NCBI GenBank assembly: GCA_047495785.1
Contig: JBLDXI010000074.1
Span: 1,488,001-1,552,000 of the forward strand
Reading direction: 5' to 3'
DNA from: Lepidodermella squamata
Taxonomy: Eukaryota; Animalia; Gastrotricha
Length of the DNA stretch: 64,000 bases
Positions 1 through 54,040 of the stretch are shown here, one piece after another (the first letter of the stretch is position 1; each line of letters begins with the position of its first letter). The notes under the pieces were generated by a model. That model did no database searches. It was not told the DNA's origin and saw only the letters and a program-made list of their open reading frames with translations. The translations under genes and the position numbers were made by a program.

Positions 1-3000
1 TAAGTTCCAGGACACCTTGGATGCGCTCATGACGGCGCCTCTCGAGTTCGCGGCTCAGAGTCTGAAAAAAGCAATTGAGGGAGCTGGAACAGATGAAGAG
101 GCAATCATTGAGGTGCTATGCTATGCTAATTACGACGACCTTCAACTAATCAAAGCCAAGTACGAAAAGCGTAAGTTGGAGTGGCCGTCGCACATTCATT
201 TGCATTATTTTTGTTCCTAGTTTACAAGGTTTCACTGCAGAAGGATATCGAGTCGGATACAAGTGGCCATTTTCGAAAACTTCTAGTTGCTCTACTCAAT
301 CGGCCTAAATCTCCAGAGAATGTTGACGTGAAAGGGGCGAAAACTGATTCGAAAACCCTACATGATGCATTTGCGAAGGGCAGTGATAAAGCTGCCGACG
401 AGTTGATCAAACTGCTGTCAGGCCGAGGGCGCTCGCAGCTACGGCTCATATTCGACACTTACAAAGCTGATTACAACACTGATGTTGTGGATGACATAAA
501 GAAAAACTTCGATAGCGACATCGAATCAGCGTTCGTCGCAACTGTCTATTCGATCCGCAACCGTTTCAAGTATTTCGCGAGCCGGTTGAATGCAGCGATG
601 GCAGGGCTTGGGACTCGAGACCAAGCTCTCATTCGGCTTATTGTCTCGCGCTGCGAAATCGATCTCGGAAATGTGAAGGAAGAGTACGAGAAAATGTACA
701 AAAAGTCTCTTGTAGCAGCCGTCTCAAGTGAAACTACGGGCGATTACTGCGACTGCTTGGTTTCGCTCATTAACGGTAACGGAAGCGGGAGCCCGCTGCC
801 AAAAGCTCCTGAACCGAAACCAGTTGAGAAGAAGGCAGAAAAGAAAGAGCCAGAGAAGAAGGAACCAGAGAAGAAAGAACCAGAGAAGCCCGAAAAAGGT
901 ATTAAAATATAAATGATGCGTATCCATATATAGTCGTATAATGAATCGCTGGGTAATTTTTGAACAGGAAAGAAAGGTAATATCAGCTTTTGCTTTCATC
1001 CAAATTTTTTAAATAGCCGGTTTATTTTATCAAGTAGAGTAGTCTGTAGCCCAATTAAATTCAAATAGCAATGCTCACGCAATTACGATACTATATATTA
1101 TATATTTCTTCAGCAATTGAGGCCTCCTGCGTCGCATCTGTACCGACTGTGGTTGCTGAGCCGAAGTTCGATGCGAAAAAAGATGCTGAGGTGTTGATGA
1201 AGGCCATGAAAGGCATTGGCACGGACGAGAAAAGCATCATCTCGGTTCTCACTCGCCGAACCTATCCGCAAAGAGCTGAGATCGAGAAGAAGTTCAAGGC
1301 GGAATACAAAAAGGTAACTTTAACATTTTTCACTCGCCATGATTACGATATTTAATGGCCTGGCAACATTTTACGAACTTAGAATTTCCTTGAAGTGAGT
1401 CTTGGTGTTGTGTATTTTGACCCCGATTCCTGATTCCCATTGCTCGTGTCATTGCTGTGAGAATCTATTTTAAAATGACGATTCGTTTCAGGAACTTCTT
1501 GCAGATCTAAAGAGTGAAACTGGAGGCGATTTCTTCAATCTTCTCACAGCCCTACTTACTCCACCTATCGAGTTCGCAGCGAAAAGTTTAAAGAAAGCGA
1601 TTCAAGGCGCTGGAACCGATGAGGAAACTCTAATCGAGGTGATCTGCTACGCATCATACGACGATCTTCAACTCATCAAGAGTAAATACGAGATGCGTGA
1701 GTTGAAGTTCTACTATATATTACCCCTTCATAATTCCCCCACTATTCGCAGTTTATCGAGTTCCGTTGCAACAAGATGCCGAAAGTGATACTAGTGGTCA
1801 TTTCCGGAAGTTGCTCGTAGCCTTGCTGAATCGGCCTAAATCGCCTGAGAATATTGATGTCAAAGCCGCGAGATCTGATGCGAAAAGCCTTCATGCCAGT
1901 ATAGCTAAAGGTGGCTCAGCAGCTGCCGATGACCTGACAACGGCTCTGTCGATAAAAGGCCGATCTCAGCTGAGGTTGATCTTCGAGAATTACAAGGCTG
2001 AATTCAAAACTGACATAGTCGATGATATTCGAGAGCATTTCGATAGCGATGTTGAAACAGCCTTTGTTGCCACTGTCGAATCGATCCGCAATAGATTCAG
2101 GTACTTCGCTACCCGGCTTGACGCGGCCATGAGTGGTGTCGGAACAAGAGATGATGCGTTGATCCGACTCATTGTCTCACGCTGTGAAATCGACCTTGGC
2201 AATATCAAGGAGGAGTTTGAAAAAATGTACAAAAAGCCATTGGTGAAAGCGGTTGGTGATGAAACGTCTGGCGATTATCGCGACGGTCTCATATCGCTGA
2301 TAATGGGCAACAATGGCAACAAGAAAGACGATCCGAAACCTCCTGAGCCGAATAAAGACAAGCCGCCACCTGAACCCAAAAAGGAGGCAAAGAAAGTAGA
2401 GCCAAAAGGTATTTTTATTTACAAACTTGCAAAGAAGTCGGACAAATATGTACTACAGCTAAAGGGAAAACAGGAGTCGACAAAGTGAAAAAAGGTTCCC
2501 AAATATTATGTAACATGTCCCTATTTTAATGTAGACCATTTCATTTCAGCTTAATAGTAGACGTAGCCAAGTATGAAATTCAATATTGTGTATAGAACCC
2601 GAAATCCTTTTCGTTTGTAGCAAAACCCTGTGGCTTAATGGAAATTAATACTCATTGCTGTTGATGTTATTCTTGTAGAAAATATAGCGTCAACGCCAAC
2701 CGTTATTCCTGAAGTCAAATTTGACGCTAAGAAGGATGCCGAGGCTCTGATGAAGGCTATGAAGGGCATTGGAACGGACGAAGATAGCCTGATAGCTGTT
2801 TTGACGCGGCGATGTTACCTCCAGCGGGCTGAGATCGAAAAAGCTTATAAGTCCGAGTACAAAAAAGTAACTATTGAACCACCATGATTGTAATGGCTAC
2901 TTGTTATCTGTTAATATATTAAAGGACTTGGAGTCAGAAATCGAAAGTGAGACTGACGGCGAATTTTTCAAAACGTTGTCAGCGCTGCTAACGTCCCCGG

Positions 3001-6000
3001 TTGAGTACCTAGCTAAATGTGCTCGAAAAGCTATTGAAGGATCGGGAACTGACGAGGAAACCTTGATCGAGGTGATTTGCGCACCCAGTTACGAGGACAT
3101 GCAGCTTCTCAAGGCCAAATACCAGCAACGTATGCTCGTATGACGTCCATGTTACTTTGTTAAAATCTCATTTTGCAGTCTACGATACTCCTCTGCAAAA
3201 AGACATTGAGGGGGATACAAGTGGAGCATTTAGAAAGCTGCTTGTTGCCCTGATCAATCGACCTAAGTCGCCTGAGAACATCGACGTGAAAGCAGCGAAA
3301 ACAGATGCGAAATCGCTGCACGACGCTATGGTGAAGGGTGGCGAAACGGCCTCAGATGAGCTGACTAAATTGCTGTCAAGCCGCGGCCGAGCTCAACTGC
3401 GACTCATTTTTGACACTTACGATGCAGACAATGACGTCGATCTCGAACCTGACATTAAGAAGCACTTCGACAGCGAGTTGGAAGCAGCCTTCGTTGCGAC
3501 AGTCCAAAGCATCCGTAATCGATTCAAATACTATGCCGGCCGCCTTGATTTCGCCATGGGAGGAAGTGGCACGAAGGACGAGATGCTCATTCGAATCATT
3601 GTCTCGCGTTGTGAACTCGATCTCGAAAATGTGAAAGATGAGTTTGAAAAGTCTTACAGCAAAACTCTGGCGAAAACAGTCGAGGATGAAACCTCTGGCG
3701 ATTACTGCAAATGTTTACTTTCCCTTATTAAGGGCAACAATGCCAACAAAATTTCGGTGGAAGAAGCCAGGAAACTTTTCAAACCTACTAAGCAGGAGGA
3801 ACACAAGGAGCCGAAGAAAGAAGAGGCTAAGAAAGAACCGGAAATTCCTCCACCGAAGCCAGATTCCAAAATGGCGCCAACGGTCCTCCCTGATCCTCAA
3901 TTTGACGTAAAGAAAGACTGCGAGGCGCTGATGAAGGCGATGAAAGGCCTGGGCACTGATGAGGACTCGCTAACTGCTGTTTTGACGAAGCGATCGTGGA
4001 AACAGAGGTCTGAAATCGAAGTCAAATACAAAGAAATCTACAAAAAGGTAAAAACCCGCTTGTCTCCCAAAATTCCCAACGTATTTGAGACATCTTGCTT
4101 TTATCAAGGAAATTAGTCAGGTAACATGAACATCAAGGCTGTTTTTTGATCCTCTAATCTAATGCTGATCTAATGCTAAATCTTTCAAATTCCACTTTAA
4201 GATTGATCTGTTCTAAACAATTTTATTTTATTAGGAGCTGGAGGCCGAGTTGAAAAGTGAAACCGAAGGCAACTATTTGATGGTGCTAACAGATCTCCTT
4301 AAGACACCCTATGAAGTTTCGGCCACCGCTTTGAATAAAGCGCTGAAAGGCAGCACGAATGAAGAGCTTCTAGTTGAAATAGTATGCAGCCAATCTTATG
4401 ACGATCTCCAGATGACACTTGGCAAATACGAAAATTGTTTGCTTACTTATTGTGCCATATGCTTTGATTCTTAACAAGTTGCTTTTCACAGTGTTTAAAA
4501 AGGCATTCATTAAGGATGTTGAAAGCGAGACAAATGGACAATTTCAGAAGTTAATGGCTGCGTTGATCAAGCGGCCGAAATCAGGTAAGGCTCCGGATCC
4601 GAAAGCTGCCAAAACGGACGCGAAAGCTCTGCATGACGAAATGCCGAAAAGCGTCGACAAGGGCTTGGATTCCTTTGTCAAGTTGCTCTCCACAAAAGGC
4701 CATACACAATTGAGGGCGGCATTCGAGGCCTACAAGGCCGATTACAAAACAGAAATCGAAGCAGACGTTCAGAAGCACTTCGGCAAGAGTCCCGATCTCC
4801 AAAAATCTCTCCTGGCAGTTGGTAAGTTCCGATCTTGCTCAAAATCCGATAAACATGTATATGTTCTCAGTCGGGATCATACGAAATAAGCCGGTGTACT
4901 TTGCGAAGAGATTTCAAGCTGCCATGGAAGGCGCTGGTACAAAAGATGAGGATTTGTCGCGCCTCTGTGTCACGCGTTGTGAAGTCGATCTAGGCACAAT
5001 CAAAGCCGAATACGAACGAATGTATAGCAAGCCACTTGTAAAAGCAGTTGAATCGGAGACTTCCGGCGATTACCAGAAAGCCCTTGTATCTCTTATCAAC
5101 GGAAACGCTCTGAGCAAAGAGAAGACTGTTACCAAAGGTTAGTCTTCACAACTATTTGCAGCATTTCCTCTATGAATCATTGCATTCTTTGGTTATAACA
5201 ATATTACAGCGGAAAATTATGTGGAGGAAGCTGAAAAAGTTAAACAAAACATTACCTCAGATGAGTGGCCTAGTTGGGAAAAAGAGGCAAATAAGCCTCA
5301 TGTCACTGGGGAAGAAGGGAATGATAAAGATGCCAGTGGTAAAGATACACAGAAAGAGGGGCAAGGTGGAGACGTAGAGATTGAAGGAGACGTGGTTGCA
5401 CCGACGGTTACTACCGAAGAAGAAAGCGATGAAGGGAAAGGTCAGAAGGATGGTGATAAAGATGATAACAAGAATGAAGTGGCCGAGGACGAGGGTGGCA
5501 CAGATGTAGGTAAGGAAGCTGAAAATAATGAAGAGTCAAAAGATGATGACAAGAAGGAAGAAGCCAAGGACGAACAGAAAGATGGCACTGATGATGGTAA
5601 GGAGACTGAAAACAAGGAAGAGTCGAAAGATGGTGATACCGAAGGAGCCAACCCTGAACGTGTGTCCGATGAAAAGCAAAAAGACGAAGAGGAAGGAGAA
5701 GGAGAAGGTAAAAAGGATGGTGATAAAGAGGGTGATAACGATGAGGACAAGAAAGATGAACAGCGGGAGGGTGAAGAAGATGTCCCAGCAGTGAAAAACG
5801 AGAACGAGGGCGATGCTGATAACGAAGATAAGCACGAAGAACCTGATGGCAATGAGAAAGACAAGGACAAAGATTCCAAGAAAGATGACAAAACTACAAC
5901 GAAAGACAGCGATAAAAAAGAGGACAAAGAGGGCAATAAACACAAAGATGGGGAAAAGGAGAAAGAGAAGGAGAAAGAGAAAGGGAAAGGGAAAGAAAAG

Positions 6001-6466: not shown

Positions 6467-7137
6467 GTCCGCGTGAGGTATGATTTTCCCAGTTTTCTCC
6501 CTCTTTGCTTGCCAAACACACCGTTGCTTTTCTATTTTCCAGACATGATCCGTCAAAAAGCAATAAATTTCAAAAAAACATCACAAACATAATCTTACAT
6601 TTTATAACGTGTTGTGAATCGAAAAATTGAATTTTCACTTTTCAAATGCTAGCTTCTTCGCATAAACTGTGCAGCTTTTGTACGCGTATTTCCGCACTTT
6701 TCTTCTTGTGCTGTAATAAGTTTGAACTTGTTTGTTGTGAAAGAGAATGGAACTTTCCAGCTCGCGTGTTTCAATAAAAGCGATCTTGCCATTTCATTTC
6801 TTCACCACTCACCACTCACACAATAACAGTGCGACGGGATGAATAATACGAGAGCCGCCGGTTAAGCGTACCATTTATTTTGCCACAAACATTGACGGCG
6901 AAAATAACCAGCGACCTAAAATTACACCCGAGTGCGTGTGTGCACGCTGTTGTTTTCACGGAGGTCAGCAGCGGCGAGCGGCGAGCGGCGAGATAATGCG
7001 GCTCACGCTCTCACCTCAATGGCAGGCTGAATCATCCACGCACAACTTGTTAATACTAAACTTTTCTAGATTGTTCCCCAGCGACCCAGTCCTCGTCGTT
7101 TTAAGGCGAGGTTGAACCATTTTTGAGTTGTATAGAA

Positions 7138-8569
7138 ATGCGCGCTTATTACATCATTTTGTTCGCGGCGTTTTTCGCCATTAAAGCACACGCCTTCGCC
7201 TTTTTCGGCAGCGCAAGCGGCGAGCCGGAAATCGAGGAAAAAGACGGTGTCTTGTGGTTGACCGAGAAAACATTCGACCTCGCACTTAAAAATTACAAGG
7301 CTCTCCTTGTTAGCTTTTACCCTTCATCCGTTATTTGTACCACTTGCCAACATGTCCACGACGAATTCGCAGCGGCGGCGAAAATTTTCACTGAGGAAGG
7401 TGAGCATGACACCAAGCTGGCTATTGTCGACGTTGCGAAGAACCCCGAGTTGAAGGAGCGCTTCCATGTCAAAAAGTACCCGGCAGTTCGGTTCTTCAAA
7501 AAAGGCGAGGAGTTCGAGGACTTGATGGGCCACGGTCACTACGTCGGCTCGTGGCACTCGCACACGATTGTTGCATGGCTGCGCAAAAAGAACGGCGAAA
7601 GTGCGTATCGCAGGCTGCATTCCACGGCTGAAATTCAGGAATTCGCCGAGGATAACGAAGCCGCCGTGGTCGGCATTTTCAAGGACCCGAACGGCAAGGA
7701 AGCCAAGGCGTTCGTTGAAGCGTCGCATCAAGTCCTCGACGACGGCGTCAATTTCGGCCTGGTGATCCCTGATGAGGATATGATGCAGACTGAGTTCGGC
7801 GACTCTGATAAAGTCGCCAAAATTTACATAATCAAGAAATTTGACGAGCTGATGAATGTCTACCACGACCAGCCGTACGACAGTGTCAAGGAAATTGTCA
7901 ATTTCGTCCGGTTACGGGCATTCCCTTACGTCGTCGATTTCTCAACTGGCGCCGAGGATGTGCAGCGATCGTTTGGAAGCCAACACATCCACAACCATCT
8001 GGTGCTGTTCGCCTCTAAATCCCATCCTGATATCCAGGTGAGCCACATGCTTTCTTTTTTATCCAGGTGAACCCGTTTGTGGGGCTGTGGGGCTATACAA
8101 AAAAATACTCAGTTTTTTTATAGCGATGCAACAAAATTCTGCACTTCTCAACCCCACGTTTAGCCTAAGGAATTGTTTGGTGGCTAGAACGTCGATTTAT
8201 CTTTATTTCCATACTCTTATTTCCTACGTTTTGTTTGTTATCTAGAGTCTGCACAGCGAGTTCCGAAAATCGGCGAAAGCTCTGCGCGCCGAATTCGGCG
8301 ATAGCATGAGCTGGACCTTTGTTGACGCCAGCAACCCGGAGCACCTCGAGTGGATGCAGTACTTTAGCGTTAAAAGCGAACAGGACACCCCACTGGTCAT
8401 GATCGTTGTTCTCGACGGTCGGAAACTCATCTATAAACTGAAACGCAAAACCCTGGAAAATGGACAGCTAAGCCCGATTGATGCAAAGGCCCTCGAGACC
8501 CATGTGCGCGATTTTTTCGCCGACAAACTTGACGTAGATGAGACAAATTATGTGAAAAATGAGCTTTAA
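7138..8569 (+). CDS. Protein disulfide isomerase family protein (thioredoxin-fold a-b-b', CTTC motif, ER-retrieval KNEL)
   Basis: Signal peptide MRAYYIILFAAFFAIKAHA. PDI a-domain motifs (EEKDGVLWLTEKTFD, LLVSFY..CTTC, LAIVD, RFHVKKYPAVRFFKKG), then b/b' motifs (AVVGIFKD, IIKKFDE, PYVVDFS). Exons 7138-8037 and 8246-8569 (phase 0). Ends KNEL*. Confidence 0.85.
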
Positions 8570-31400: not shown

Positions 31401-33584
31401 AGGTAATCTTCACAAAATTGGCTGATCCCGAATGACTTTACGTAAATTTGTGCTAGCTCCAAGTAACATCTAACAATTTAGATATGAGGTAAAAATTTGT
31501 TCCGTAATAATTTAGCAATACAACATCTATACTTGATGATACTTAGCCATAACAATATTATAGGCTGTGATAAAGTGTAACGAACCTAGAAGAGCCTGCA
31601 TGATGAGGTCGCAGTAGTGCGGGCGGGCGTCGGGCGGCAGGCGCTTGACCACCGACTGCAGCGCGGCGCACAGCTGCGACTGCAGGTCCTCGTACTGCTG
31701 CCGCGCCTCCGCCGACGACAGCGTGTTCTTGTCGACGGCGAGCACCGACCGCAGCCGCTCCAGGATCACGCTCGTCGTCCGGTACACCGTCTGCGCGCAA
31801 TCGTCCGGCGAGTTCTTCACCAGCTCCATCAGCGCCTCGAACGCCGACACGCGCAGGTTCGACTTGCCCGCATCGCCCCCGCCGCCCTGCGTCGCGTCCA
31901 CGCGGTCCGTCGCCGCCAGCAGCTCCGTTACGATGCGCTCGAAGAACGGCGACAGCGGGTACGTCGGGATCACCGCGTTCTCCGCCCGCCCGGCCGTCGC
32001 CAGGTCGAACAACCCCTGCGCCAGCGACGACAGCGCCCACGCCGCGTTCGTCGCCACGCGCGGCTCCATTTTCAGCGCGCCCAGCAGCCCTTCGACCAGG
32101 CCCGGCAACACGGCCGGTCCCGACGCCGCCTCAGCGCACACCTCGCACACGCGGCCCACCGCCCACGCCGCCGTGTCTCGCACCGTCACCGACTGGTCCT
32201 GCAGCAGGTGCACGAGCAGGGGCAGCGCAGGCCCGGCCAGCGTCTTCAACTTCTCCGGGTCCGGGCCCTCGAGGCACGAGCCGAACGCCATGACCGCCGC
32301 GTCTCGGCACCGCCAGTCCGTCGACTGGATGTTCGCCTGCACGAACGGCAGCACGTGGCCCAGGATCTCGTCCGCCACCGTCTGCGCCAGCAGCATCAGA
32401 CACACGCCGGCCGCTTTGTTTGGCGTCCACTCGTCGTCTTCGTCCTCCTCCTCGGTTTCGTCCTGCTGCTTCAGCCGCTCCAGCAGCTGCGGCACGATGT
32501 ACGGCAACGCGCCGCGGGCGTAGTGCATCGACGTACGGTCGGGCGGGCGGTTCTCCTCCTGCGCCTCTTCCCACTCTTGCTGGATCGCCTGCTCCTCTTC
32601 GCAGATCGACGACCAGAACTCGATACCCTGAAGGGCGATGCCGTCATTCGGCGACATCATCGCGTTTCTGCTGATCGGGAACAACGCCGGTGCCATGTAC
32701 GGTTCTAGGTGCTCGTAGTACAGTGATACGATCTTGACCAGGCACTGCAACGCTGCGATTGGCACCTGCGTGTCGCCATTGCACTGAGTCGCGTGGCAAA
32801 TGTGTTCCATCAGGTAGTTGCGCTCATTCGCCTGCTCGAAGTTGGTCGAACAGTACTCCAACGAGTTGAACAACGCACGGACTGCAACGAGTTTCACCGC
32901 CTGTGATCAAATTACACATAGTGAAATGAAAACATATTTAATACTGTCGCAATCTTACCTCATTTTGAGTGTCTCGGTGCATGCAAGACACAATCGCAGT
33001 TAGCAGATGGCCGGAGTAGGCTTGCAACACAGCGCCTTGCTCCATGTCTTGACACATGTAACCAATCGCTTCGAGGGCCGCCTGTTTGAACTCTGGAGGC
33101 GCATCAGCCTTCACCGCCTGACCTGTGATGGCTTCTATCAGCCCAGGCCATGTATTCAACGGCAACTCGATGCATGCTATTTGAGCGACGCATTGCGCTG
33201 CTGAGCTTGGTCGTGTTTGTTCAGTTCCTAGTGAGGCTAGTACGTTTTCTTTGATGACAGCGCGAGAATCGAGCGGGATTGACAGCCAGCGTTGAGATAG
33301 CTGAGCGCGAACCGACGGGTCTTTCGCGTACAATGCGTTCTTCAGCTGAAGACCAGCTTGCATACGCGCTACATTTCCCTGGGATGTGTCACGCAGCACC
33401 AATGACAACTGGCGCATATACTCAGGGAAGTTTTGTTGAGCTGCAGATTCCAAGAATCGCAACGCATTTTGCAGCTCTTGTTGATCTAAAAGAAACAATT
33501 AATCAGCTGAGACAGTGCTCACACACAAATAAACAAACTTGGCGAAGTTGTCTTTTCGAGGATTTGAATCAGGTCAACCTGCAT
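25441..33584 (-). CDS. KPNB1: Importin subunit beta-1 (karyopherin beta-1)
   Basis: Exons 33584-33539 (MQVDLIQILEKTTSP), 33485-32959, 32900-31586, 29774-29178, 25799-25441. Diagnostic motifs: ARMQAGLQLKNAL, SSAAQCVAQIACIELP, LQGIEFWSSICEEE, acidic loop [66 protein letters not shown]. Confidence 0.97.
26031..26468. mobile_element. MITE / non-autonomous Tc1-mariner/pogo-type element in KPNB1 intron 4
   Basis: ~125-bp near-perfect terminal inverted repeats (26031-26155 vs 26344-26468, starting CCGTCAGATGGGGTGACTTTAGC). Flanked by TA on both sides (26029-30 and 26469-70). Internal GGGGTGACTTT subrepeats. No transposase ORF. Confidence 0.88.
26491..28700 (+). pseudogene. Decayed intron-containing gene (copy A), antisense within KPNB1 intron 4
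   Basis: GC-rich coding-like blocks with stops and frameshifts (INGDKEVELLIQA; LTLTKCGRTLFAF; WEPYVTDFPTMLLPP; EWEWAHEDEREVNVNVAAAMKAFEPKDKR), homologous to 30152-31208. Confidence 0.6.
30152..31208 (+). pseudogene. Decayed or partly intact paralog (copy B), antisense within KPNB1 intron 3
   Basis: INGDKEVELLIRA and LTLTLTTSGRSLFAF blocks, plus ORF 30510-31208 with WEMYVTDVQSMLLPP and DWDWADEEEREVNVNVVAQMRGFQNKDKR. Many differences from copy A are synonymous. Confidence 0.6.
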
Positions 33585-41677: not shown

Positions 41678-44600
41678 TTAGACTCGTTGATCACTGGTTC
41701 GAGTTGCGGCGGCCGCACTGTTATTGTTGCTGTTTGGCTTGCGTTGCCGGTGCTTGACCATCTGCAGCAGGATGAGTTTGCGGGTGCCGAACTTGTCGCC
41801 GAGCGCGGCGACGGTGCGCCCGTCCGGCGAGATCTTGATCGAGAACACGTCCGTGTGCGTGTTGAACCAGCACAGCTGCTTGCCGGTCGAGCGCCGCCAC
41901 AGCCGGATCGTGTGGTCGGACGAGCCGGAGGCGACGAGGTCGAGCGAGTCGTTGCTCGCCAGCGCCGTGCACCACACCTCGTCGGTGTGGCCCGTCAGCG
42001 TGTGCTCGCACGTCTCCGTCGCCAGGTCCCACACTTTGAGGGTGCAGTCGCTGGAGGCGGACACGAGGTAGCGCAGGTCGTTGTGCGAGATCGCCAGCGA
42101 GTTGACGGCGCTGAGGTGCGCGAACGACGCGCCGCCCACGCCGCCGCCCGCCTCGGGCGACGCCGCCGTCTGGTAGAGCTGGCGCAGCGCGCGCGCCAAC
42201 TGCACGTCCCAGATGATGATCTCGCCCTTGCGCGTGCCCGTCGCCGCCTCCACGTTCGAGATGATGACCGTGCACTCGGGGTACGCGTCGAACTCGAGCG
42301 AGTTCGCCTCGATGAACGTGCGCGACAGGTCGAACGACAGGTAGTGCGCGTTGCCGGTGAAGGGCGACAGGAAGCCGAGCACGGCGTAGCGGTTGTCGGG
42401 CGTGACGAGCGCGCTCACCAGCGAGTCCGCGTCGCCCACCGTCCAGCTCGTGCGCATCTCCTTCACCTGCTGGTTGCGCTGCACGTCCCACACGACGGCG
42501 GCCGTGCCTTCGCTCGAGGTCCGCGCCAGCAGTAGCTGGTCGCCGGCGCCGGAGCCGTCGCCGCCGCGCAGCAGCGCCGAGGCCGTGTAGTAGACGGGCG
42601 GCTGCGTGTGCAGCTGCCGGCCCGACGCGAAGTCCCACAGTTCGAACTTGCGGTAGGCGGGCGGGACGTCGGCGGGCAGGCTCGCGCCCTGGGCCATGTG
42701 CCCGGCGAGCATGGTCTCGTCGCAGCACAGGTGCAGGTCGCCGGAGCCGGTGTCGAGGCCGGCGACCGTGCGCAGCAGCTCGCCGCTCTGCATGTCCCAG
42801 ACCTGGGGCGGGCCCGTCGACGACCCGGTCACCACGTACCGGCCGTCCGACGTGAACAGGAAGCAGTCGACGCGCACCTCATCACTAAGGTACTGCGGCA
42901 TGCCGGAGAACTGCGATGCAATCGTTCCATAACCCTATTCAAAAGTATTCAACAGTAAGCCAAAAGGTTTATTTTTTGTTAGGTGATGGCAACTTACAGC
43001 TGCTGGCGGTAGGAACTGTTCGGTTTCGCGGACGAGTTCCCGCTTGTGGCTGGTCGACGTGAAGGCCGAGTAGGCGCCGAACGCCTGCGGCTGCGGCTGC
43101 ACCAGCGGCGCCGTTTGAACTTCTGTATCAGCTCGTAGTAGCACTTCGGTTTCAACAACTCCTGAAATGATCAAATCAGTTAATTAATCAAGAACCAGCA
43201 GAGTTTGATTGAGTAATAACTAAGTATTACTCAACAACTAATATCTAATTATGCATTGGCAACTACTGACTACGGGTTAGCATGCAGTAGACTAAAATAG
43301 TATAGTAGGGGTGAGTTCTAGTCTGCTAAGGGTAGTTACACAGTAGTTTACAATGACGTACTAGGCGGCGGCGGAGACGGAATTTGCGGCGGCGGGCAAA
43401 CAGGCGGCAAGAGAACTTGCTGCTCGAGTGTCGCTGCACATACGTCGTAGCAGTAGCAGTAGGTAGGTAGGTAGGTAGGGATGGCGAAATTATAAAAGCA
43501 GGCCACAAGGTTAACAGCGAACGGACAGGCGGAAAGCACAACGGGAATGGAGAAATAAAATAAAAAAATACGTTATATTAAAAGAAGGTTATATAGATAG
43601 GTCTATTACAATTATGATACAAGCGAAAGCCAGCAAAAATTGCTCAGAAATGTCGATTTTTCATCTAAAGGAAGTCTACTAGAAATCGACACCTCTCTGA
43701 GCGCATTTTTTGCTTTCCAAAAGCGAAAGCGGGTTGAAATGGACTACATATTATGATAGTAGAAAAAAGAACGAACCTCTAGCGAAAGCGGCCTGGACAA
43801 GTTGGTAGTTGGCGATGGGCTTGGGCGCCGTCACAGTGAGCACCTTGGCCGAGGATGGGCTCGAGAAGCACGGGCACCATCCGGGCTTGCAGCGGTAGAA
43901 CGCCCACAGCAAGGCCGAGAGGAGTAGCAGAAGCGCGAGGATGCAGCCAGCCGCGACTAGGCCGGCAATGGCGGCCGGCGTCAGCAAGGGTGACGTAGCA
44001 GCGATGGGCGCAATGATGGGCGCACCCAGTTCGATGCCGGCGCCACCGCCAGCCGCCGACTGCGCCAACAACAACGCGACGTTGTTCTCGATGAGGATGG
44101 TATCGTCGTCGGTGGTGAGCGCAGCCGGGATCCAGAACGGTGTCGACGCGACCTTGACATTGCCGTGTGCAGTGCCAGCGAGGCCGGCGCTCTCGAACGG
44201 CCGTGCGCCGTTGATGTATAAGCCGGCGATGATGCCGGTGAACGGCGCCGTCCAGTAGTCGTCCGGCCACGAGATCGACGCGTCGACGCCGGCCGGCGGG
44301 CGAGCGCCGATGACGACGTAGAGCGGCGGGTTGCGCCAGGCAGCGGCGAGGGCGGCGGCGGCCTCGCTCGACAGCAGCACGCTCGCGATCGGGTACAGGC
44401 CGTCGGCGCTCAGGTTCAGGTGCTTGCCGTCGCGCACCAGCGTCACGCCGTGGTACTGGCCGTCGGCGAACGACGGCAGGTCTTTCGGCGATCCGGCGAG
44501 CGTGTACTCGCGGCTGCCGATCGAAACAACAGCTACGGGTCGTTTGTCCTTCATGCGCAGTTCGACGACGACGGGCGTGGGGTCGCCGGGGCGGTAACCC

Positions 44601-47600
44601 GTGATGCGGGCGATGACGCCGTTCGGGTGGTACGTCATGAAGCCGACGGCGAGGCGGTCGACGCCGCTGCCGGACAACGGCGCGTCCGGCGTCTGCAGCT
44701 GGAAGGCGAGCATGCCGCCGACGGGGAACGTCGTGAAGTTGTAGCCGATCGCCGGTTCCTGGTCGCAGTTCGCTCCGACACGGCCGGTTGGCGAGCAGTC
44801 GCACGTGAAGGTGAGGCCGAGCGGCTTGCAGATGCCGCCGTTCTTGCACGAGTCCGGGCGACAGGCGACGCCAGAGGCGCATCCCGAGGCGAGGCCACGA
44901 GTCGATGCCAGCGATGAGCCGAGAGTCGACACCAACTGCTGCAAGTTGACGATGCGGCCGTTGGCGAACAACGAGGCGAAGCAGCCAGAGATGCCTGGCG
45001 GCAGGCGGACGTCCGATCCGGCGGTGAAGCGTTGCGCGACCTCGGCCGGCACGCCGCCCAGGTAAACGGTAGTCTGGAAGTTGACAACGCCAGACAGCGC
45101 GCGGACAGGGTACGCCAGCGAGGCGATTTCGTTGTCGTCGACGGAGGCGCTCACTTGCAGGGATGACCCGCCTGAGGCCGCTCCGAACACCAGGGTGACC
45201 GAGTGCCACTTGTCGTCCGCTAGCGATGCGACGTCCTCGGCGAGAGGCAGCGCACGAGACTGCGCGCCCACGCCCAGGTGCAGCCGGCCGTTGATGAGTT
45301 CGACGCGGGGCAGGGCCGTGGCCATGTTCGGCAGGTCGAAGGCGGCGACGAGGCCGTTCTGTTCGCGGGTGCGGAACGAAAAGGCGTACACCGAGCCGTC
45401 GCGCAGCCGGTCTTGCACGTCGACGAACGAGGTTGGCGTGAGCAGGGTGACTGGGAACAGCACGAAGTCCGTCGGGGGCCGCGGCTCGCCGACGTGGTCG
45501 ATGGAGCCGACTGGCGGTTTCACTGGTTCCTTACCGGTTCCGATGTCGAAGATGGTCCAGAATGGCGGGCGACCGGCGCCGTGCGGTTGGATGACAAAGC
45601 CCTGCAGCTGGCCGACGAAGCCGCCGTCCGGGCTGGCGGGGTCGCGGGGCGCCGCGATGATGACGCGCTCGATGTCGATGTAGAAGCCGTCCTCGCCGGC
45701 GATGGGGTCCGGGCGGATCTCGATGCCGTCGACGACGACGACGGTGTCCTTGCCGCGGCGGGTGATGCGCACGTCGTGCCACCGGTTGTCGGCGATGCGC
45801 GGCGCCGAGACGACGCGCGACGTGCGGAACCCGTCGGCGCCGAACACCACCTTCAGCAGGCCGTTCTCGAGCGAGGCGACGATGTAGTCGTCGGGGCTCG
45901 CCGTCGACTCGGTGTGGAAGAGCGGGCCGGTGGCGGAGGGCGTCTTCACGCGGAACGCGATGTCGTTGCGGTGCGTCGACTGCGACGGGCGGAGGACGAG
46001 CGTGGCGCTCGTCGTGCCGTTGAACGTGTAGATGGGCGCCGGGTCAGCGCACGAGGCGCCGGAGAAGGCGGTGGCGGAGCAGTCGCACACGTAGCGCCGC
46101 GCCGCCTCCGCCTGCGTCCACGAGTCGAAGCAGCGGCCGGCGCCGCAGATGCGCGCCGAGCACGCCGATTTCGGGTCGCGGCACCCCTCGGCCACGTTCG
46201 GCTCCGACTTGATGAGGGTGCGGAAGTCGAGTAGTTGCGAGTCGATCGTCAGCGACAGCACGCAGCCGACGAAGCCGCGGGCGGGCGCGCGGTGCGTGTA
46301 CAGCAGCCAGGGCAGGGCGTCGAAGTCAGCGGTGCCGCCGACGACGACGCGCCAGTCGCCGGACTGGCGCAGGAACGGCGCCTGTACGGACACGACCATC
46401 TCCTTCGAGTTGTCGCACGACGCCGAGACCCGCGAGTGCTGCAGCGACACTGTCGCCGCATGACGCTGGCCATCAGTCACATTCGAGCACAGCAGCAATC
46501 TGGAAATGACAACAACAATGGAATTAAAATATCGGCAAATAATCGAGAGGTGAAAGGGGTGATGAGAGCACAGTGAATGGATGGGGTGACTATTATTTTC
46601 AGGTCTTTCATTTCTTTCTCGGTGCTCGAAGTCTCGCAGTGCGCTAATTTTTATGAACGCGCTTGATCAAGTGCATTATCAAGTATTTGTCGCACCCCAT
46701 CGAGACTTTTAGCACATTTTCACGAAAAAATGTACAGGTGGTGAAGAATAGAAGGATGAAGGAGGAGTGATGGATGAAAAACGGTGATGATGAAAGGTGA
46801 AAGGTGGGGTTTTGTGTTTTTTGCAGGTACAGTGCCTATAATTATCAGGTCGACTAATTACCTTCGTCCGACTTCGCTACTGTAAGCGTTAAGCAAAACA
46901 ACATGAAGATAAACATAAAACAAACAACAGCGTCAGTTGAACACGCAAAAAACTAAAGGATTGCTACCGCACTCTACAGTGTAAAGCATCTCGAGGCTGC
47001 CTTTTGCGCTTACCTTTTAGCGCCGATGCCTGACCATACGAAATACAGGTGGCCGTCGAAGATTTCCAGCACGATGAAGTGGCGTTGTTGAGGCGCCTCG
47101 ACGAGCGACGTCACCGCCCGCCCGTTGCCGTTGCCGTTCGTCTTGTTGTTCGGCTCGGCGAACAGCAGCAGCGACTCGCGTTCCAGCGTCGAAAACGTCA
47201 CCGTGATGCTGTTGGCGCCGGCCGCCTGCGTGCCCAGCGGCCAATCAGCGTCGACTGTAATGCCCGAAGTCGGGCGAACAAACGTGACCGCGGGCACGGC
47301 TGGGTACGCCGGCGTCGTCACCGGGTTGTAGGCGATGACCTTGACCCACGGGTCGCGCGGCTCCTTGTAGTACAGGTCGAGGAGGTCGAGCGGCGCCGGC
47401 TGCGCGTCGCCGCGGATCACCGCCTCGTTGATGAAGCCGCGGAACTGTTCGCGGATGGACGCGTCCTGGCGCCATTCGGTCTCAGGCGCGCCGCCCAAGT
47501 GGTAAATCAAATCGTCGATCAGGTGATACGCGCTTGGCAGGTCCACTTCCTTAACCGGCTCGCCGTCGAGGAAAATGGACAGGCGGGACGTGTCGGCCTG

Positions 47601-50600
47601 GCGCGAGACGCTCAGCTGCAAGTGGTGCACGGCGTTGTCGTTGATAGGGCGCGGCGAGGCGTAGCGGAAGGCGGGCGCACGGCGGTCCGGGCCGCCGGCG
47701 ACCACCAGCTTGCCGGCCTCGAGACCGATCGACAGCGACTGGCGGCGTTGCGGGTCGGCCGTGCTCGGGTTCGAGTGTGTCAGCAGCCAGCCGTCGGACG
47801 CGCCCGTCTGGAACTTGAGGTCGAACTCGTCGCGGGTGTTGACACGCTTGTAGCTGGTCGGCGCCTGGCGCAGGTCGTATTCGACGAACCACCGGCCATC
47901 GGGCTGCAGTGGCGTGCGTGGCGGTTCGGTGGGCAGGCCGGTGTCGGGCTTGTCGATGGCGCGGATCAGCTCGTAGCGGGCCTTCCACAGCTCGAGCGTG
48001 GCGATGTCCATGTCGGCGTGTTTCGCCCACGAGCCGCGCGACTGCTCCGGCCGCCCCACGTAGAACGAGTAGGCGTTGGTGGTGGCGACGGCGGTGTCGG
48101 CGCGCGTCTTGGCCGCGAACTGCCGCTCGACTTTACGGCCGTTGATGTAGAGCGTGAGGCCGGTTTCGTTGTACCAGGAGACGTCGATCCAGTTCCACGA
48201 GTTGAGGCGCAGGCCGGGGCCCTCGACCGTCCACTCGTCGTGCTGCGAGCGCATCTTGGCAACGACCTTGCCGCCGCGGTAGAACACCTCGGCGGTGTCG
48301 GACGACAGCAGGTACATGCCGTCGTAGAGGCGCGTCGGCCGCACCAGCATGCGGATCGTGAAGCCGTTGACGCAGCCGTCCAGGTGCTGGCACGTGATGT
48401 TGTCGCCGATGCGCACGCCCTGCAGCGTGCCGTCCAGGTGCAGCGCCGTCTGACCGTCGGGGCGCGCCACGATGCGTGGGCCACCCTGCGTGTACACGAA
48501 GATGCGGTCGTGCTTGACGAGGTCGTTGTGCACCTCCTGGAACGGGAACACCTCCTTCTCGACGGCGCCGCGGTAGATCAGGTCGAACGTGAGGAGGGTC
48601 TCGCGGGGCGCGTGCCAGAACTGAACTTCGTCGAGGTAGGCGTGGGCGTACGGTTTGCCGGACGATTCGACGACATCGCGGCCGAGGAACACGCCGCCGG
48701 GTGTTGACGACGAGGTGGGCGCGAACCCGGCAATGCCAGTCGCCGCTTGCTTGTTCGGCTCGGCGACAAAGTCCTTCTCGGTGTTGTTGATGTGCAGGGA
48801 GAGGCCGCGGAGCGGGTGCCACGAGAAGTCGACGAGGTTCCACTGGTTGATGGAGAGGTCGTGCGTGGACACGGTCCAGATCTCGTCGCCGGCGGGCAGC
48901 GGGCGGCGCAGGCGGCCGACGAGTTTGCCGGCCTCGTACGTGAGCGCGTAGTCCTTGGTGGCGAGGAACGTGGAGCCGTTGCGCAGCTCGACCGGCTTCA
49001 CGTACAGCGTGACCATGAGGCCGTAGCGGCAGTGCGCGACGGAGACGGCGCAGCGCGACGACTTGATCGGGATCTGCGCGTACGAGTCGGCGCCGTCCAG
49101 GTACAGCGCCTGCTGGATGTAGCCCTGCCGCAGCTCGGCTGTTCGGTAGATGTACGTGTCGTACTTCGGGTGCTCGATCGACGTCCGGCTCGAGTCTTTG
49201 TAGTACTCCATCGGGAACGACAGCCACTCGAATTCATCTAAAAGAAGGGGAGAAACAAATAAAAAGAAATTAAAAGATGTACGGGCAATAAGAGGTCATC
49301 TGCTGCAATACAAATGATATCATATAGGTCAATTATACACCACGGCCGTCAATAAGAAAATATAGGTCATCATGCCGTCGTTTGGGATGAGAATCATAAT
49401 CTAATGTAATACAGGGTGGTTCACCATTCATTATACGTGACTACTCCTGGTATTTTACATAGACTGTACCTATTAAACTTGCTAGCTGATTGCAAGCGCT
49501 GCATTCTTCTTCTTCTAATTACACATACAAATATAGTAATAATCAGTTATTATTAATTCTATAATAAAAGATGAGTGATAAAATAAAATAAAAGACTTGA
49601 TGAGAAAATGGACAGTTGTGCTCCACAAAGTGCCGAGATAAACACTAGTTTAATTCTGAACCTAAAGCCTAATATAAATTGGTACTCGAGTTTTAACGAT
49701 CGAAACCGGAAACAGCCAAAAGCATTTCTAACCCAGCAGGTTTGATACCCTCATGATCATTTTGATGGAATGCGAAAACATTCATGGCAAGCGATTCCGA
49801 ATTAACGGAATATTTTTTTTCCCAACAGCCGCGTTCACTACGACCAGGCAAGGCCAGCCAACTCTGCGTTTAATAATTAATAATTAGTTGATTATTATTA
49901 TATTATTTGTACTCTGAGTAAATCTAATAGCCTAATAACCTAATAATGAATGTATAAAAATGACAGATAAAGAAGTGGTGACACGAATCGCAAGGTGCCA
50001 CAAATGAGAGGCCTCACGTGCGAGTCACAATCAAATTAAAATAACAGGAGATAAATCAATTATTTGTAATGATAATGATTATAGTAATACCAGCAAGCGG
50101 CAACTACTGATATGGCGGGCTTAAACAAACCTTTCATCTTTTGAGCGTCTAAAATTGTTGACGAAACAAATTGTAACGGAAACAAAAAAATTACAACACA
50201 CATCGCATAGTAGGTAAGAGAGGTGATTAGACAAAAATCGAGCCAGGTAAAACATTTTTTCTACGAAACTGAAATTTCGAAAAATTAGCTGAATGATTTT
50301 ACCTCTGATGATGTACTCGTGGGCGAGCAGGTAGTCACGTGTTGCGAACCAGAATTCCATCTCGTCGAAATTGGCCTTGGCGTAGTCGAAATTAACACCA
50401 GGCGAATCACCGACGTTTTGCTGGCCAATCAAAAATTTCGCATCAGCTAAACACAAAAACAAACATGAATGAATAATATGGACAAGATCATCGAATGAAT
50501 GATCTTACATCTAGCGCCTGGGCTGTTCGACTCGCGGCGGTCGGCGTGGGCGATGAGGCGCCGGTTCAGGAACACGTCGAGGCCCTTCTCCGGGTGCCAC

Positions 50601-53600
50601 GAGAACTCGAAAAAGTACCAGCGATCGCGGCGGATCATGTCGCGCGGGATCTCCACCTGCCACTTGTACGCCGTCGACGAGTCCTGGCCGGCGCGACCGC
50701 CCGCCTCCGACCCGCCGGCGCCACCCGCACCGCTGTTCGAGCCGTCGTTGCGGCCCGACCGCTGGTTGAAGATCACGTACAGCTTCTGGTCACGCTGGAA
50801 GAACTGGATGCCGTCGTTGGGCCCGGTCGACAGCAGGTAGCGCGGCTTGTCAAAGTCGATGCCCGAGTCGAAGTTGACGAGCATCGAAACGAAAACGCCG
50901 TGGCGGCACAGCGTGAGGTTCGTGAGGCACGACCGCTGCGCCGCACCCACGTTCGCCGCCTCCATCCACTGCTTGTCGCCATTCAGACGCACCGACCAGT
51001 CGACCTTGCCCGCCGGCGAGTGCGTCGGGTTGCCGTAAAGGTTGATGTGCAGGCTGGGGTGGACGAGGCGCAGCTCGCCGTTCCGCTCCGTGTAGTCCAT
51101 GTCGAGCACGTAGAACGGCGGCAGGCCGCGCAGGATGTAGTCGTGCGCGACGAGCCACTCGCGCTCGGCGTACCAGTACTCGAGCTCGTCGACGTCGAGG
51201 TCGGCCGGGGCGCCGCGTTCCGCCGCCGTCGTCGAGCACCGCCCGACGTAGAAGCGGTGCAGCTGCTCGGACGCGAGTTGCGAGTCGATCTTGCCGACGT
51301 GCCGCGTCGCGTTCGCCTCGGGCACGTGCGCCACCAGCGCGTTGTCGACGTAGACGCGCAGGCCGCGCTCCAGTTGCCACGTCAGCTCGACGTAGTGCCA
51401 GCCGGACGTCGACGACGGCACCGAGTCGCCGTTCGACGCGCCCGCCAGCAGCCGCGAGTCCAGATCAGCCTGCCACACGTGCGTCGACGTCGCCACTTCG
51501 GCCTTGAGGCGAGCGGCGTCCCTGACTAGGCGAATTCCGTTGAGACCGGTGTCGAGGTAGCACGCCGGGGTTGCGAGTTGCGAGTTCACCTGCGGCACCC
51601 GCAGCCAGAAGGCGACGAGGGCGCCGTGGTGGCAGTAGTCGAGGTTGCCGAGGCATTTCGACCGGTGAAGACCGAGATCGACGAGGGCGCCGTTGCCGCG
51701 CAGACGCACGGCCTGGCGAGACCGGCCCTTGATGAGTGGCGACTCGGTCTCGGAACCGGGCACGAGGCCGATGGCGAGTTGCGAGTGAGCGACACGCATC
51801 GGCGCCGACCCACCACCTCGGGCTCCGTCACGCTCCACTTCGTCGAACGACACGTCGTAGTGCTGCGGCCGGCGGCGCTGGATGAAATCAACTGCGAGCA
51901 GGGTCTCTCGAGAGGCAGTCCATAACGAAACTTCGTCCAGCAAACCATTCAACGAGGCAGCTGCCTGAGGCGACCCAGCGACGTACAAGTGCGGTTCAGT
52001 TGAGGCAGGCGCCAGGCGATCGGTAGATTCGATCGAGCGGTCCGAGGTTGATGCCGAAATTTCGCCGTTGTTCACGAGAATTGACAGCACGAGGTTCTTT
52101 TCGTCGCGCTTCCGCAGCGACACCTCGACGAGGCACCACGAGCCGAGCGGCATGTCCGTTGTCGTCCACGTCTCGTACGCCTCGTACGACCGCGGGTCAG
52201 TTCCGATGAGCACGTTCGCGACAGCACGCAGCCGCTGGCCGACCAGCCACACCTGGATGCCGTAAGGACCGGCTAGCAACAGTGGCACAGGCGCCGCTGC
52301 CTTCGAGTTCAGTTGCACCCACAGCGATCCCATGACGCCGTACGGGCAAGCGTCGACGCTCGTGTTCAGTCGAGTGAAGCAGGCCAGGGCGGCCGGGGCA
52401 GGCGAAACGGCAACGTACTGCTTCGAGTTGGCCGGCAGCGAGAGCGACATGCCGAACTTGGCGTCGCTCGAGAACGAGGCGGCGAGTTGTCCAGCGGCGG
52501 TTCCAGCCAGCACGGCGCGCACATCAGGCGAGTCGAGCAGCTTCGACGACCCGGCACCGGGGGCGAAGCGGTCGAGCGGCAGACGGACCCGCGAGATGGC
52601 CTGTTCGCGGATCTGGTCCGCCGTCCTCGCCTCGGCGTAGAAGTGCAGTTCGTCGACGCGGATGAGGCCCTTGGGCTCGAGCGGGTGGCCCTCGGGCAGG
52701 GCGCCGGCGCCTCCGATGTGGTACTCGATGTTGCGGCCGATGTAGAAGTACTTGTAGCGGAGGGAGGTCGAGTCGCGGGACGTCTCGGCCGGTTCGAAGG
52801 CTCGCCGCGCCGACTCGGCAACCGCCCGCCCGTCTACGTACATCGTGAGTTCGCGCGTGTCCCACACAGCGGCGACGTGGTACCAGCGCTCGGGCCTCAC
52901 GCCCCGGAACGCCGCTTTCCACAACTCGCCACTCGGCGTGCGGAACGTGAACTGCAGCGAGTGTTGAACGAGTTCGAGCGCGACACCGTGCGACACAGCC
53001 GTGTGGCCGCCGTTGGTGAGGTACACGCCATCAGAGCCAACCGTGTCCTTGAACCACAGCCAAAGACCCAGGGTGTAGCCGCGTTCGCATTTCGACAGGT
53101 CGCCGAAGCACTCCTGGCGGTGCGAGGCGCCGGACACGACCAGCGTCTGTTTCGAGCAGTCGAGTTCGAGCGAGCGGCGGAGGACGCCCGGCTGCAGGCT
53201 GGGCGCGCCGTAGACGCGCGTGTCGAGCCCGCCGACGTTGGCGATCGACTCGTGCTCGATGGCGTCCATGGCGAGGTGGTAGTGCGGCGCCTTGTTCTCG
53301 CCGCACGCCGCCGCGCGCGCCTTGCACTTGAAGTCGTCGAGCGAGGCGGTGGCGCTCAGCTTCGTCACGCAGTAGTAGAGCACGTTGCGGCAGATGTCGG
53401 GCTGGCGGTCGCAGATCTCGACGGCCGACTCGTTGAGGCCGTGCGACGAGCGGAGGCGCGCGCGCCGCCAGTTGCAGTCGCCACAGCCGGCGAAGAACAC
53501 GACGTTGGCGACGTCGCCGACGAAGTCGCGCTGGGCGCGCGGGGCCGTCGCGAGCAGGCGGGTGCCGCGCGGCACGCCGCCGACGTAGACCGGGGTGGAG

Positions 53601-54040
53601 CCGGCGCCGAAGCGCAGGTCGGCGGCCTGCAGGGTGCGCGACACGGAGTGGCCGGCGACCTTGAGCGAGACCTCGAGGCGGTTGCGCGACACCTCGACCT
53701 CGCGCCACGCGTTGTTGGCGACGGCGGCCGGGTGCACGATGGTGAGCTCCTGCGGCGGCGCGGAGAAGCCGTCGGCTGTCTTGGCGGCGATGCGCATCTG
53801 CAGCGTGAGTTGCCGGTCGTTGATGCTCAGCATGAGGTAGTCGCCCTTGCCGTCGTCCGTGTACACGAGCACGGCGTTTTGCTCGCGCGTGCGGAAGTCG
53901 AACGAGAGGCGCGCCTGCGAACACGCGTCCCACGGCTCGTACGCCGCGAACTGGTCGGCGACGCCGCGGAACTGCAGCGCGCCAACACTTGTTGTCATTA
54001 TGATGATTGTTGTTGTTAATAGTAGTGGTAATTTCAGCAT
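41678..54040 (-). CDS. Alpha-neurexin-like type I membrane protein with six inserted pentraxin/LamG3-like repeats and an intracellular WD40 beta-propeller (~3,363 aa)
   Basis: Exons 54040-50509, 50446-50303, 49237-47014, 46499-43777, 43433-43362, 43161-42998, 42910-41678. All introns are GT-AG and phase-compatible; total 10,092 nt is divisible by 3. Signal peptide; neurexin-like motifs (WDACSQARLSFDFRT..YTDDG; YDLRQAP..DEFDLKFQT; FIVLEIFDGHLYF; RYVCDCSATAFSGASC; CRPDSCKNGGIC..FTCDC; DRLAVGFMT); TM at ~43895-43975; WD repeats (YLVSASSDCTLKVWD, TLTGHTDEVWC, ASGSSDHTIRLW). Confidence 0.85.

Follow-up and report, generated by a model that had tools for sequence, protein, structure and literature searches.

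Positions 1,488,001 to 1,552,000 of contig JBLDXI010000074.1 (assembly GCA_047495785.1) of the gastrotrich Lepidodermella squamata, a stretch of 64,000 nucleotides (nt) designated here as the window, carry on the minus strand a gene for a large LNS/EGF protein with six tandem LamG3-like repeats. A preliminary description of the locus regarded it as an otherwise complete alpha-neurexin with six pentraxin-like repeats inserted between EGF1 and LNS2. Is this gene a neurexin enlarged by an insertion, or a member of another family to whose layout the repeats belong? Probably, it is a complete gene of the PHRED-1 family in its long form, and its six-LamG3 module is ancestral to molluscs, annelids, and Lepidodermella.

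PHRED-1 of Schmidtea mediterranea was described as a "divergent neurexin-1 homolog" with LamG, EGF, transmembrane (TM), and WD40 parts (Adler & Sanchez Alvarado 2017, 10.1101/131789, Dev Biol 427:165). In the same paper, homologues were reported only from lophotrochozoans, expression was seen in muscle, and the gene was needed for muscle-fibre patterning in regeneration. Six Laminin G and nine EGF domains were counted in SMART; no LamG3 or pentraxin-like repeats are mentioned (10.1101/131789).

Gene Model and Domain Order

The gene is located at 54040-41678 on the minus strand, is 12.4 kb long, and has six exons with a predicted product of ~3,347 amino acids (aa). The predicted order is signal peptide, LNS1, degenerate EGF, six tandem repeats (R1 to R6), LNS2, LNS3, EGF, LNS4, LNS5, EGF, LNS6, TM helix, linker, and cytoplasmic WD40 region. 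Three long open frames with Laminin G domains (50447-54040, 47010-49211, and 43751-46498) are linked through the 144-nt exon 2 by GT..AG introns of 62, 1,065, and 514 nt. The features of the gene are as follows; a slash marks the splice junction, and ORF stands for open reading frame.

50509-54040, minus strand: exon 1, single open frame (ORF 50447-54040) with start codon, signal peptide, LNS1, EGF1, R1 to R3, and most of R4; donor AT/GTAAGA; Pfam Laminin_G_2 at aa 49-182 and Laminin_G_3 at aa 317-477
53426-53977, minus strand: LNS1 (aa 22-205); top PDB match neurexin-1-alpha residues 1-134, E 8e-15
aa ~206-249, minus strand: degenerate EGF1, within exon 1
52586-53293, minus strand: R1 (aa 250-485)
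51875-52585, minus strand: R2 (aa 486-722)
51125-51874, minus strand: R3 (aa 723-972)
50510-51124, minus strand: N-terminal 205 aa of R4 (aa 973-1177)
50303-50446, minus strand: exon 2 (144 nt), C-terminal end of R4 with the closing motif; acceptor tttag/, donor G/GTAAAA
47014-49237, minus strand: exon 3, covering R5, R6, LNS2, and the first part of LNS3 (ORF 47010-49211, extended on its upstream side by open frame); Pfam Laminin_G_3 and Laminin_G_2 matches
48570-49235, minus strand: R5 (aa 1227-1448)
47934-48569, minus strand: R6 (aa 1449-1660)
47334-47933, minus strand: LNS2 (aa 1661-1860); Pfam Laminin_G_2 37 bits
43777-46499, minus strand: exon 4, with the rest of LNS3, EGF2, LNS4, LNS5, EGF3, LNS6, stalk, TM helix (aa ~2809-2835), and juxtamembrane motif WAFY(R/K)CKPGWC; top PDB match neurexin-1-alpha, 1.4e-70; Pfam four Laminin_G_2 stretches and EGF
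42998-43161, minus strand: exon 5 (164 nt), cytoplasmic linker; phase 1 in-frame join to exon 4
41678-42934, minus strand: exon 6, WD40 beta-propeller region on the cytoplasmic side, with the stop codon; Pfam WD40 76 bits

The N-terminus is hydrophobic, and the hydropathy maximum of the protein lies at aa 2809-2827, in the predicted TM helix. EGF1 has five Cys, is degenerate, and gave no Pfam EGF match. R4 is distributed over three exons: most of it is in exon 1, and it runs through exon 2 to the opening codon of exon 3. The junctions of LNS1 with the repeats and of the repeats with LNS2 lie inside single open exons, and therefore the architecture is independent of splice prediction.

This arrangement bears directly on the possibility that two or three adjacent head-to-tail genes, one for the LamG3 repeats, one neurexin-like, and one for the WD40 region, were misread as one. 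The joins are predicted from sequence, and a stand-alone ending in ...STSL could be modelled after exon 4, which would suit such a reading. It is scarcely credible, however, as the supposed borders are spanned by single open exons (LNS1 with R1-R4, and R5-R6 with LNS2-3), and both R4 and LNS3 are interrupted by an intron whose flanking exons complete the domain. Against it stand also the conservation of the linker and WD40 exons described below, while the STSL exon is not conserved, and the occurrence of the same order in one annotated protein in Owenia, ~20 molluscs, flatworms, and Seison.

WD40 Region and PHRED-1 Family Membership

In the related contig L001, exons 5 and 6 are conserved directly after the homologue of exon 4, with 71% (tblastx) and 94% identity, respectively. 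The phase of the exon 4-5 join is compatible in both species, and no conserved ATG occurs in the linker or in the WD40 exon. The terminal exon modelled at first, 43433-43348 (...PPPPSTSL*), was rejected because it has no counterpart in L001, where the linker and WD40 exons are conserved. The 43348-43433 exon on the minus strand has an AG acceptor in the right phase and would end the protein in the class-I PDZ-ligand-like ...PPPPSTSL; a minor short-tailed isoform may use it.

The WD40 region is ~420 aa long. The C-terminus is colinear over ~400-540 aa with PHRED-type proteins of Patella (40% identity), Owenia (42%), and Schistosoma (31%), with E values of 1e-69 to 1e-83, and the juxtamembrane motif WAFY(K/R)CKPGWC is common to the window protein and the Owenia protein. 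When exon 1 was used in a HMMER search of 1.84 billion proteins, the matches were a close metagenome relative (exon-1 ORF P0010, 71-74% identity), a protein of Owenia fusiformis, and many mollusc fragments. The Owenia protein (CAH1790210.1) is 3,736 aa long, matches the N-terminus with E 8e-139, and has Laminin_G_2, Laminin_G_3, and C-terminal WD40 domains. The predicted protein of the window has the features of PHRED-1: a signal peptide with LNS/EGF ectodomain, a single TM with WD40, and a conserved WD40 C-terminus.

A search with the Owenia WD40 region as query recovered ~20 full-length mollusc proteins of 3,071-3,873 aa, all named "uncharacterized" and all with PF02210, PF13385, and WD40, together with a short paralogue of scallop and flatworm proteins. 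Some PHRED-type proteins or fragments bear neurexin names in public records, namely P0014 (Plakobranchus "neurexin-2-alpha", LamG3 repeats only) and P0211 (Mizuhopecten, UniRef "Neurexin-1a").

Relationship of the LNS Domains to Neurexins

The flanks of the repeat array are neurexin-like. In blastp, aa 1673-2775 of the window protein were colinear with residues 290-1311 (LNS2-LNS6) of Sorex NRXN1-alpha, with 25% identity over 1,151 columns and E 8e-61. Similar colinearity was found with neurexins of Haliotis and Ptychodera, and aa 21-180 aligned to LNS1 of NRXN1. Six LNS domains were recognized in the protein by an LNS hidden Markov model (HMM). The place given to the repeats in the preliminary description, between LNS1-(EGF1) and a neurexin-ordered LNS2-6 series, agrees with these alignments. 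NRXN1-alpha scored 219 bits, while Nrx-IV/CASPR reached at most 85 bits, and pikachurin was also much lower than neurexin. No discoidin (F5/8C) or fibrinogen-like domains were found by Pfam in the window protein.

A tree was computed from 62 LNS domains, with canonical neurexins represented by a mammal, a hemichordate, a fly, and a mollusc. LNS1 of the window protein falls into a clade with canonical neurexin LNS1 domains (support 100/100). LNS4 (99/93) and LNS6 (99/91, with CASPR outside) join their positional counterparts in neurexin. The PHRED-type domains adjoin the canonical clades NrxL2 (98/98), NrxL4 (99/91), and NrxL6 (100/97) and are not included in them. LNS3 and LNS5 of the window protein are on long branches with no clear placement. 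CASPR LNS domains are outside the joint neurexin/PHRED clades. In this sequence tree, the LNS domains of the window protein group with neurexin and not with CASPR, as the preliminary description had expected. CASPR/Nrx-IV and pikachurin were rejected as parent family according to both the scores and the tree.

These data also touch the reading as a canonical alpha-neurexin with a lineage-specific, pentraxin-like insertion of ~1,400 aa between EGF1 and LNS2. The LNS order and the colinearity with NRXN1-alpha would be expected for such a protein, as would the clustering of LNS1, LNS4, and LNS6 with their neurexin counterparts and the top PDB match to neurexin-1-alpha. Yet the canonical LNS2, LNS4, and LNS6 clades leave the window protein out, and a WD40 propeller is present after the TM instead of a short PDZ-binding tail, so that the protein is not "otherwise complete alpha-neurexin". 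Moreover, molluscs have both a canonical neurexin (Haliotis) and long PHRED-type proteins, and the location of the six repeats is constant from phylum to phylum, with five of the six in positional clades, as given below. A canonical neurexin with an insertion is thus highly improbable. The canonical neurexin of Haliotis is 1,482 aa long.

The Six LamG3 Repeats

All six motifs quoted for the repeats in the preliminary description were found in the minus-strand translation, at aa 310, 554, 796, 1038, 1288, and 1508, and its span of 47960-53290 corresponds to aa ~251-1652, that is, to R1 to R6. An HMM built from the six window repeats delimits six units of 206-254 aa, with envelopes at aa 250-485, 486-723, 723-972, 973-1226, 1230-1449, and 1455-1660. 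Pairwise blastp linked R3 with R4 (2e-20), R5 with R6 (4e-17), R3 with R5 (4e-10), R2 with R5 (2e-8), and R1 with R3 (4e-5), at 22-30% identity, far above chance expectation. Conserved among the repeats are three Trp, a C-x6-C pair with G after it, and a DE..xW...RE.L helix that closes the unit. The closing motif (DE..xW...R..L) stands after each repeat, but it is degenerate in R6. The six units show no nucleotide repeat when compared at the DNA level, and they are therefore ancient duplicates rather than a product of misassembly. A recent tandem duplication or assembly artefact was excluded by this result, by the low identity among the repeats, and by a colinear relative.

Pfam Laminin_G_3 (PF13385) scored 48.3 bits for R1, over the cut-off of 27.6, and 26.5, 19, and 17 bits for R6, R2, and R5, respectively. 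R3 and R4 had no Pfam score of their own and are tied to Laminin_G_3 only via their homology to the other repeats. No repeat matched Pfam Pentaxin (PF00354) at E<=1, and the pentraxin signature HxCx(S/T)Wx(S/T) was not found in the window protein. Among PDB sequences, the repeat profile matched a LamG-like S-layer domain (7e-11) and PTX3 (6e-5).

Repeat Array across Spiralia

The repeat HMM recognized exactly six repeats at aa ~245-1515 in the Owenia isoform of 4,148 aa (P0187) and in ~16 of the long proteins from molluscs. Two of these mollusc records start inside the first repeat, and their repeats thus begin near aa 1. Patella and the window protein have the same layout of six LNS and six LamG3 domains. 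Four repeats were recognized in the 3,736-aa Owenia isoform. No repeat was found by the HMM in the short scallop paralogue or in proteins of Spirometra, Schistosoma, and Mesocestoides, and the flatworm homologues examined are also without an LNS1-type domain. In Seison (Rotifera), a protein of 4,756 aa combines LNS1, Fz domains, and a WD40 tail with weaker LamG3 repeats.

In a tree of 54 repeats, the sequences cluster by position and not by species. Clades were obtained for R1 (100/100), R2 (80/62), R5 (90/83), and R6 (97/90), and the R3 and R4 repeats form sister groups. Five of the six window repeats are in the cross-phylum clade of their own position, R4 being inside the R4 clade with support 99/92, and the window repeats are outside the mollusc clades. 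Because six repeats stand at the same place in different phyla, and five of the window repeats are in clades of their own position, the array is ancestral rather than an insertion of one lineage. The word "inserted" in the preliminary description does not fit this distribution. From these comparisons, the six-repeat block predates at least the split of molluscs and annelids, and it may be ancestral for Spiralia; the flatworm homologues indicate that it was lost in flatworms.

Several forms of the long and short proteins were observed within species. Owenia isoforms P0011 and P0187, from the same contig, differ by exactly two LamG3 repeats (~412 aa), and alternative splicing of R5-R6 is suggested for this annelid. 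In the window gene, R5-R6 is in one exon with LNS2, and therefore this pair is not skippable alone. The second scallop paralogue (P0210-P0213, ~2,625 aa) is without LNS1 and LamG3 repeats and has nine LNS domains and a WD40 tail; the nine domains look like a duplicated LNS2-5 cassette plus LNS6. Long and short PHRED-type genes are present on one contig in Ylistrum balloti.

Fold of the Repeats

R3, which was missed by Pfam, was modelled in AlphaFold2 from an alignment of 49 repeat sequences, and the R5-R6 pair was modelled as well. The R3 model is an all-beta jelly roll with a predicted local distance difference test (pLDDT) of 88.8 and a predicted template modelling score (pTM) of 0.88. The two-repeat model of R5-R6 has pLDDT 90.5 and pTM 0.87, and it suggests a defined interface between adjacent repeats.

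The R3 model was compared with known structures in Foldseek and VIA-align, and it falls in the ConA-like lectin/LamG superfamily, in agreement with the LamG3-like character proposed in the preliminary description. The highest values (Z ~16, up to 16.6) were obtained with sugar-binding domain 4 of the arabinanase AbnA and with the lectin-like HCN domain of clostridial neurotoxins, both of which cover all 250 residues. Lower values were obtained with collagen IX NC4 (Z 12.8), the pentraxin domain of PTX3 (12.4), laminin LG (12.1), the PTX-like domain of ADGRG4 (11.8), and neurexin LNS4 (11.7), and these matches begin at about residue 50 of the model. According to the fold, profile, and signature results, the repeats are therefore jelly rolls of the LamG3 type, with a beta segment added at the N-terminus. 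On the models, they are pentraxin-like at the superfamily level only.

The preliminary description had compared the repeats with the pentraxin-like domain of ADGRD-type adhesion G protein-coupled receptors (GPCRs). This comparison stands in part, as adhesion GPCRs have the nearest LamG3 arrays that the search recovered outside the family. True pentraxin (PTX) domains, exon-shuffled from a receptor of ADGRD or ADGRG type and working as they do there, are nevertheless an unlikely source. These GPCR arrays are the nearest non-family HMM matches found, and the profile match to PTX3 and the Z value to human ADGRG4 point the same way. But a Pentaxin match at E<=1 and the pentraxin signature are both missing, and the Z values to pentraxins, ADGRG4, neurexin LNS4, and laminin LG do not differ appreciably (11-12.4). 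The HCN and bacterial sugar-binding domains cover in addition the ~50 N-terminal residues that pentraxins lack, and the HMM matched the GPCR arrays in part and with low scores (20-62 bits), with no readable direction of transfer. When the two profiles are set side by side, Laminin_G_3 is recognized for R1, with R6 near the cut-off, and Pentaxin for none of the repeats.

The nearest repeat relatives found outside the family are invertebrate adhesion GPCRs (P0053, P0096, P0150) with four to six Laminin_G_3 domains before GAIN/GPS/7tm_2. Acanthaster planci LOC110986089, for example, has EGF_CA, LamG3 repeats, GAIN, GPS, and 7tm_2. Other mosaic proteins also have some of the nearest LamG3 arrays found outside the PHRED family.

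Constraint and Codon Usage

The related metagenome contig L002 has the same exons as the window gene, including exon 2 with its splice sites; its counterpart of exon 3 is 73% identical. Between the window protein and this relative, identity is 65-83% in the repeats and 60-73% in the LNS domains. In R1-R4, the same codon is used at only 33% of the identical residues, and G+C content at third codon positions (GC3) is 0.86 in the window gene and 0.38 in the relative. As few codons are shared while the protein is conserved, synonymous sites are saturated and the protein has been retained. The codon comparison indicates that the six-repeat module is under purifying selection. The gap in codon usage to a 70%-identical relative is extreme; exons of the window gene have 54-68% GC, and introns and flanks have ~40-45%.

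Other Features of the Window

Other ORFs in the window code for a four-repeat single-exon annexin (3157-4116, plus strand), a thioredoxin-fold protein (7123-8070, plus strand), and an importin-beta-like HEAT/TPR segment (31530-32897, minus strand). An Rfam scan of the whole window gave no match.

Comparison with Known Proteins

The window protein resembles PHRED-1 in its signal peptide, neurexin-1-related LNS/EGF ectodomain, single TM, WD40 region with strongly conserved C-terminus, and homologues in spiralians only. It differs in the additional LNS1-EGF1-6xLamG3 module and in three EGF positions, whereas PHRED-1 has nine EGF domains. The long PHRED-type proteins of molluscs and annelids have the same order of parts, six LamG3 domains, and a WD40 tail. 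Examples are Patella caerulea SNE40_023527, Biomphalaria glabrata LOC106070898, Ostrea edulis LOC125678424, and Owenia CAH1790210.1 with the 4,148-aa isoform. Repeat identity of these proteins to the window protein is 27-41%; Owenia and oysters have extra LNS domains and a far longer, low-complexity cytoplasmic linker, while the window gene is very compact and GC3-rich.

Alpha-neurexins (NRXN1-3, Drosophila Nrx-1) have the order LNS1-EGF-LNS2-LNS3-EGF-LNS4-LNS5-EGF-LNS6-TM in common with the window protein, with positional correspondence of the domains. They have nothing between EGF1 and LNS2 and a short PDZ-ligand tail, in contrast to the six LamG3 domains and the WD40 propeller found here. 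Adhesion GPCRs have the superfamily fold (ADGRG4, PDB 8B55) and tandem Laminin_G_3 arrays in the ectodomain, but they are 7TM proteins with GAIN/GPS, their sequence similarity is low and partial, and human receptors have a single PTX-like domain.

Possible Role of the Module

LNS1, EGF1, and the six LamG3 repeats form a conserved N-terminal module atop a neurexin-like LNS2-6 array. The PHRED-1 family is a spiralian paralogue of neurexin in which a single TM helix connects the LNS/EGF ectodomain with a WD40 propeller in the cytoplasm. The repeats would stack end to end as a rather stiff rod, as suggested by the conserved closing helix, the absence of linkers between the repeats, the conservation by position, and the high pTM of the pair model. 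If each domain measures ~4-5 nm, the rod would place LNS1 25-30 nm past LNS2-6. Six lectin-like surfaces would be offered to matrix or glycan ligands, and partners in the cytoplasm would be recruited by the WD40 propeller. If planarian PHRED-1 is a guide, the protein would serve the adhesion of muscle cells and the organisation of their fibres rather than the synapse.

Several points weigh against this reading or parts of it. The function of the protein is inferred by analogy, and planarian PHRED-1 is probably without the repeat array, as the flatworm homologues have none. With the planarian protein probably lacking the module, the planarian phenotype is therefore no direct evidence on the function of the repeats. 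Membership in the PHRED-1 family was shown via other flatworm, mollusc, and annelid homologues standing in for the planarian sequence. The exon joins, above all 4-5-6, are predicted from frame, splice signals, and conservation only. The pTM is only an indirect sign of a stiff interface between repeats. Finally, R3 of the window groups with R4 of the window (97/68) inside the R4 clade, unlike in every other species, and one position is therefore without simple one-to-one orthology. This grouping may be due to gene conversion between neighbours or to long-branch or compositional attraction. The composition of R3 is deviant in the window protein.

Taken as a whole, the proposal is tentative and is held with less than even confidence: LNS1-EGF1-6xLamG3 would be the ancestral spiralian module of a "long" PHRED-type class, weaker in Seison and lost in flatworms and in the short scallop paralogue, whose rigid rod would set the reach of LNS1 and bind matrix or glycans.

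Significance

The PHRED-1 family is published, and public databases contain gene models of the long form with PF13385; the window gene is one more member and not a new kind of system. No paper describing a LamG3/pentraxin array in neurexin-like or PHRED proteins was found in the literature. The published description of the family (LamG, EGF, WD40) takes no account of a block of ~1,300 aa in which six LamG3 domains keep their positions from phylum to phylum. Most non-flatworm members have this block, and its conservation equals or exceeds that of the LNS domains. A tempting misreading is corrected by placing the gene not as a neurexin with a doubled ectodomain, but in PHRED-1, so far studied only in planarian muscle. 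The finding is relevant to studies of PHRED-type proteins in molluscs and annelids and to the annotation of "neurexin-like" genes there. If the ancestral rod module is real, the PHRED family would have an extracellular function invisible to planarian work.

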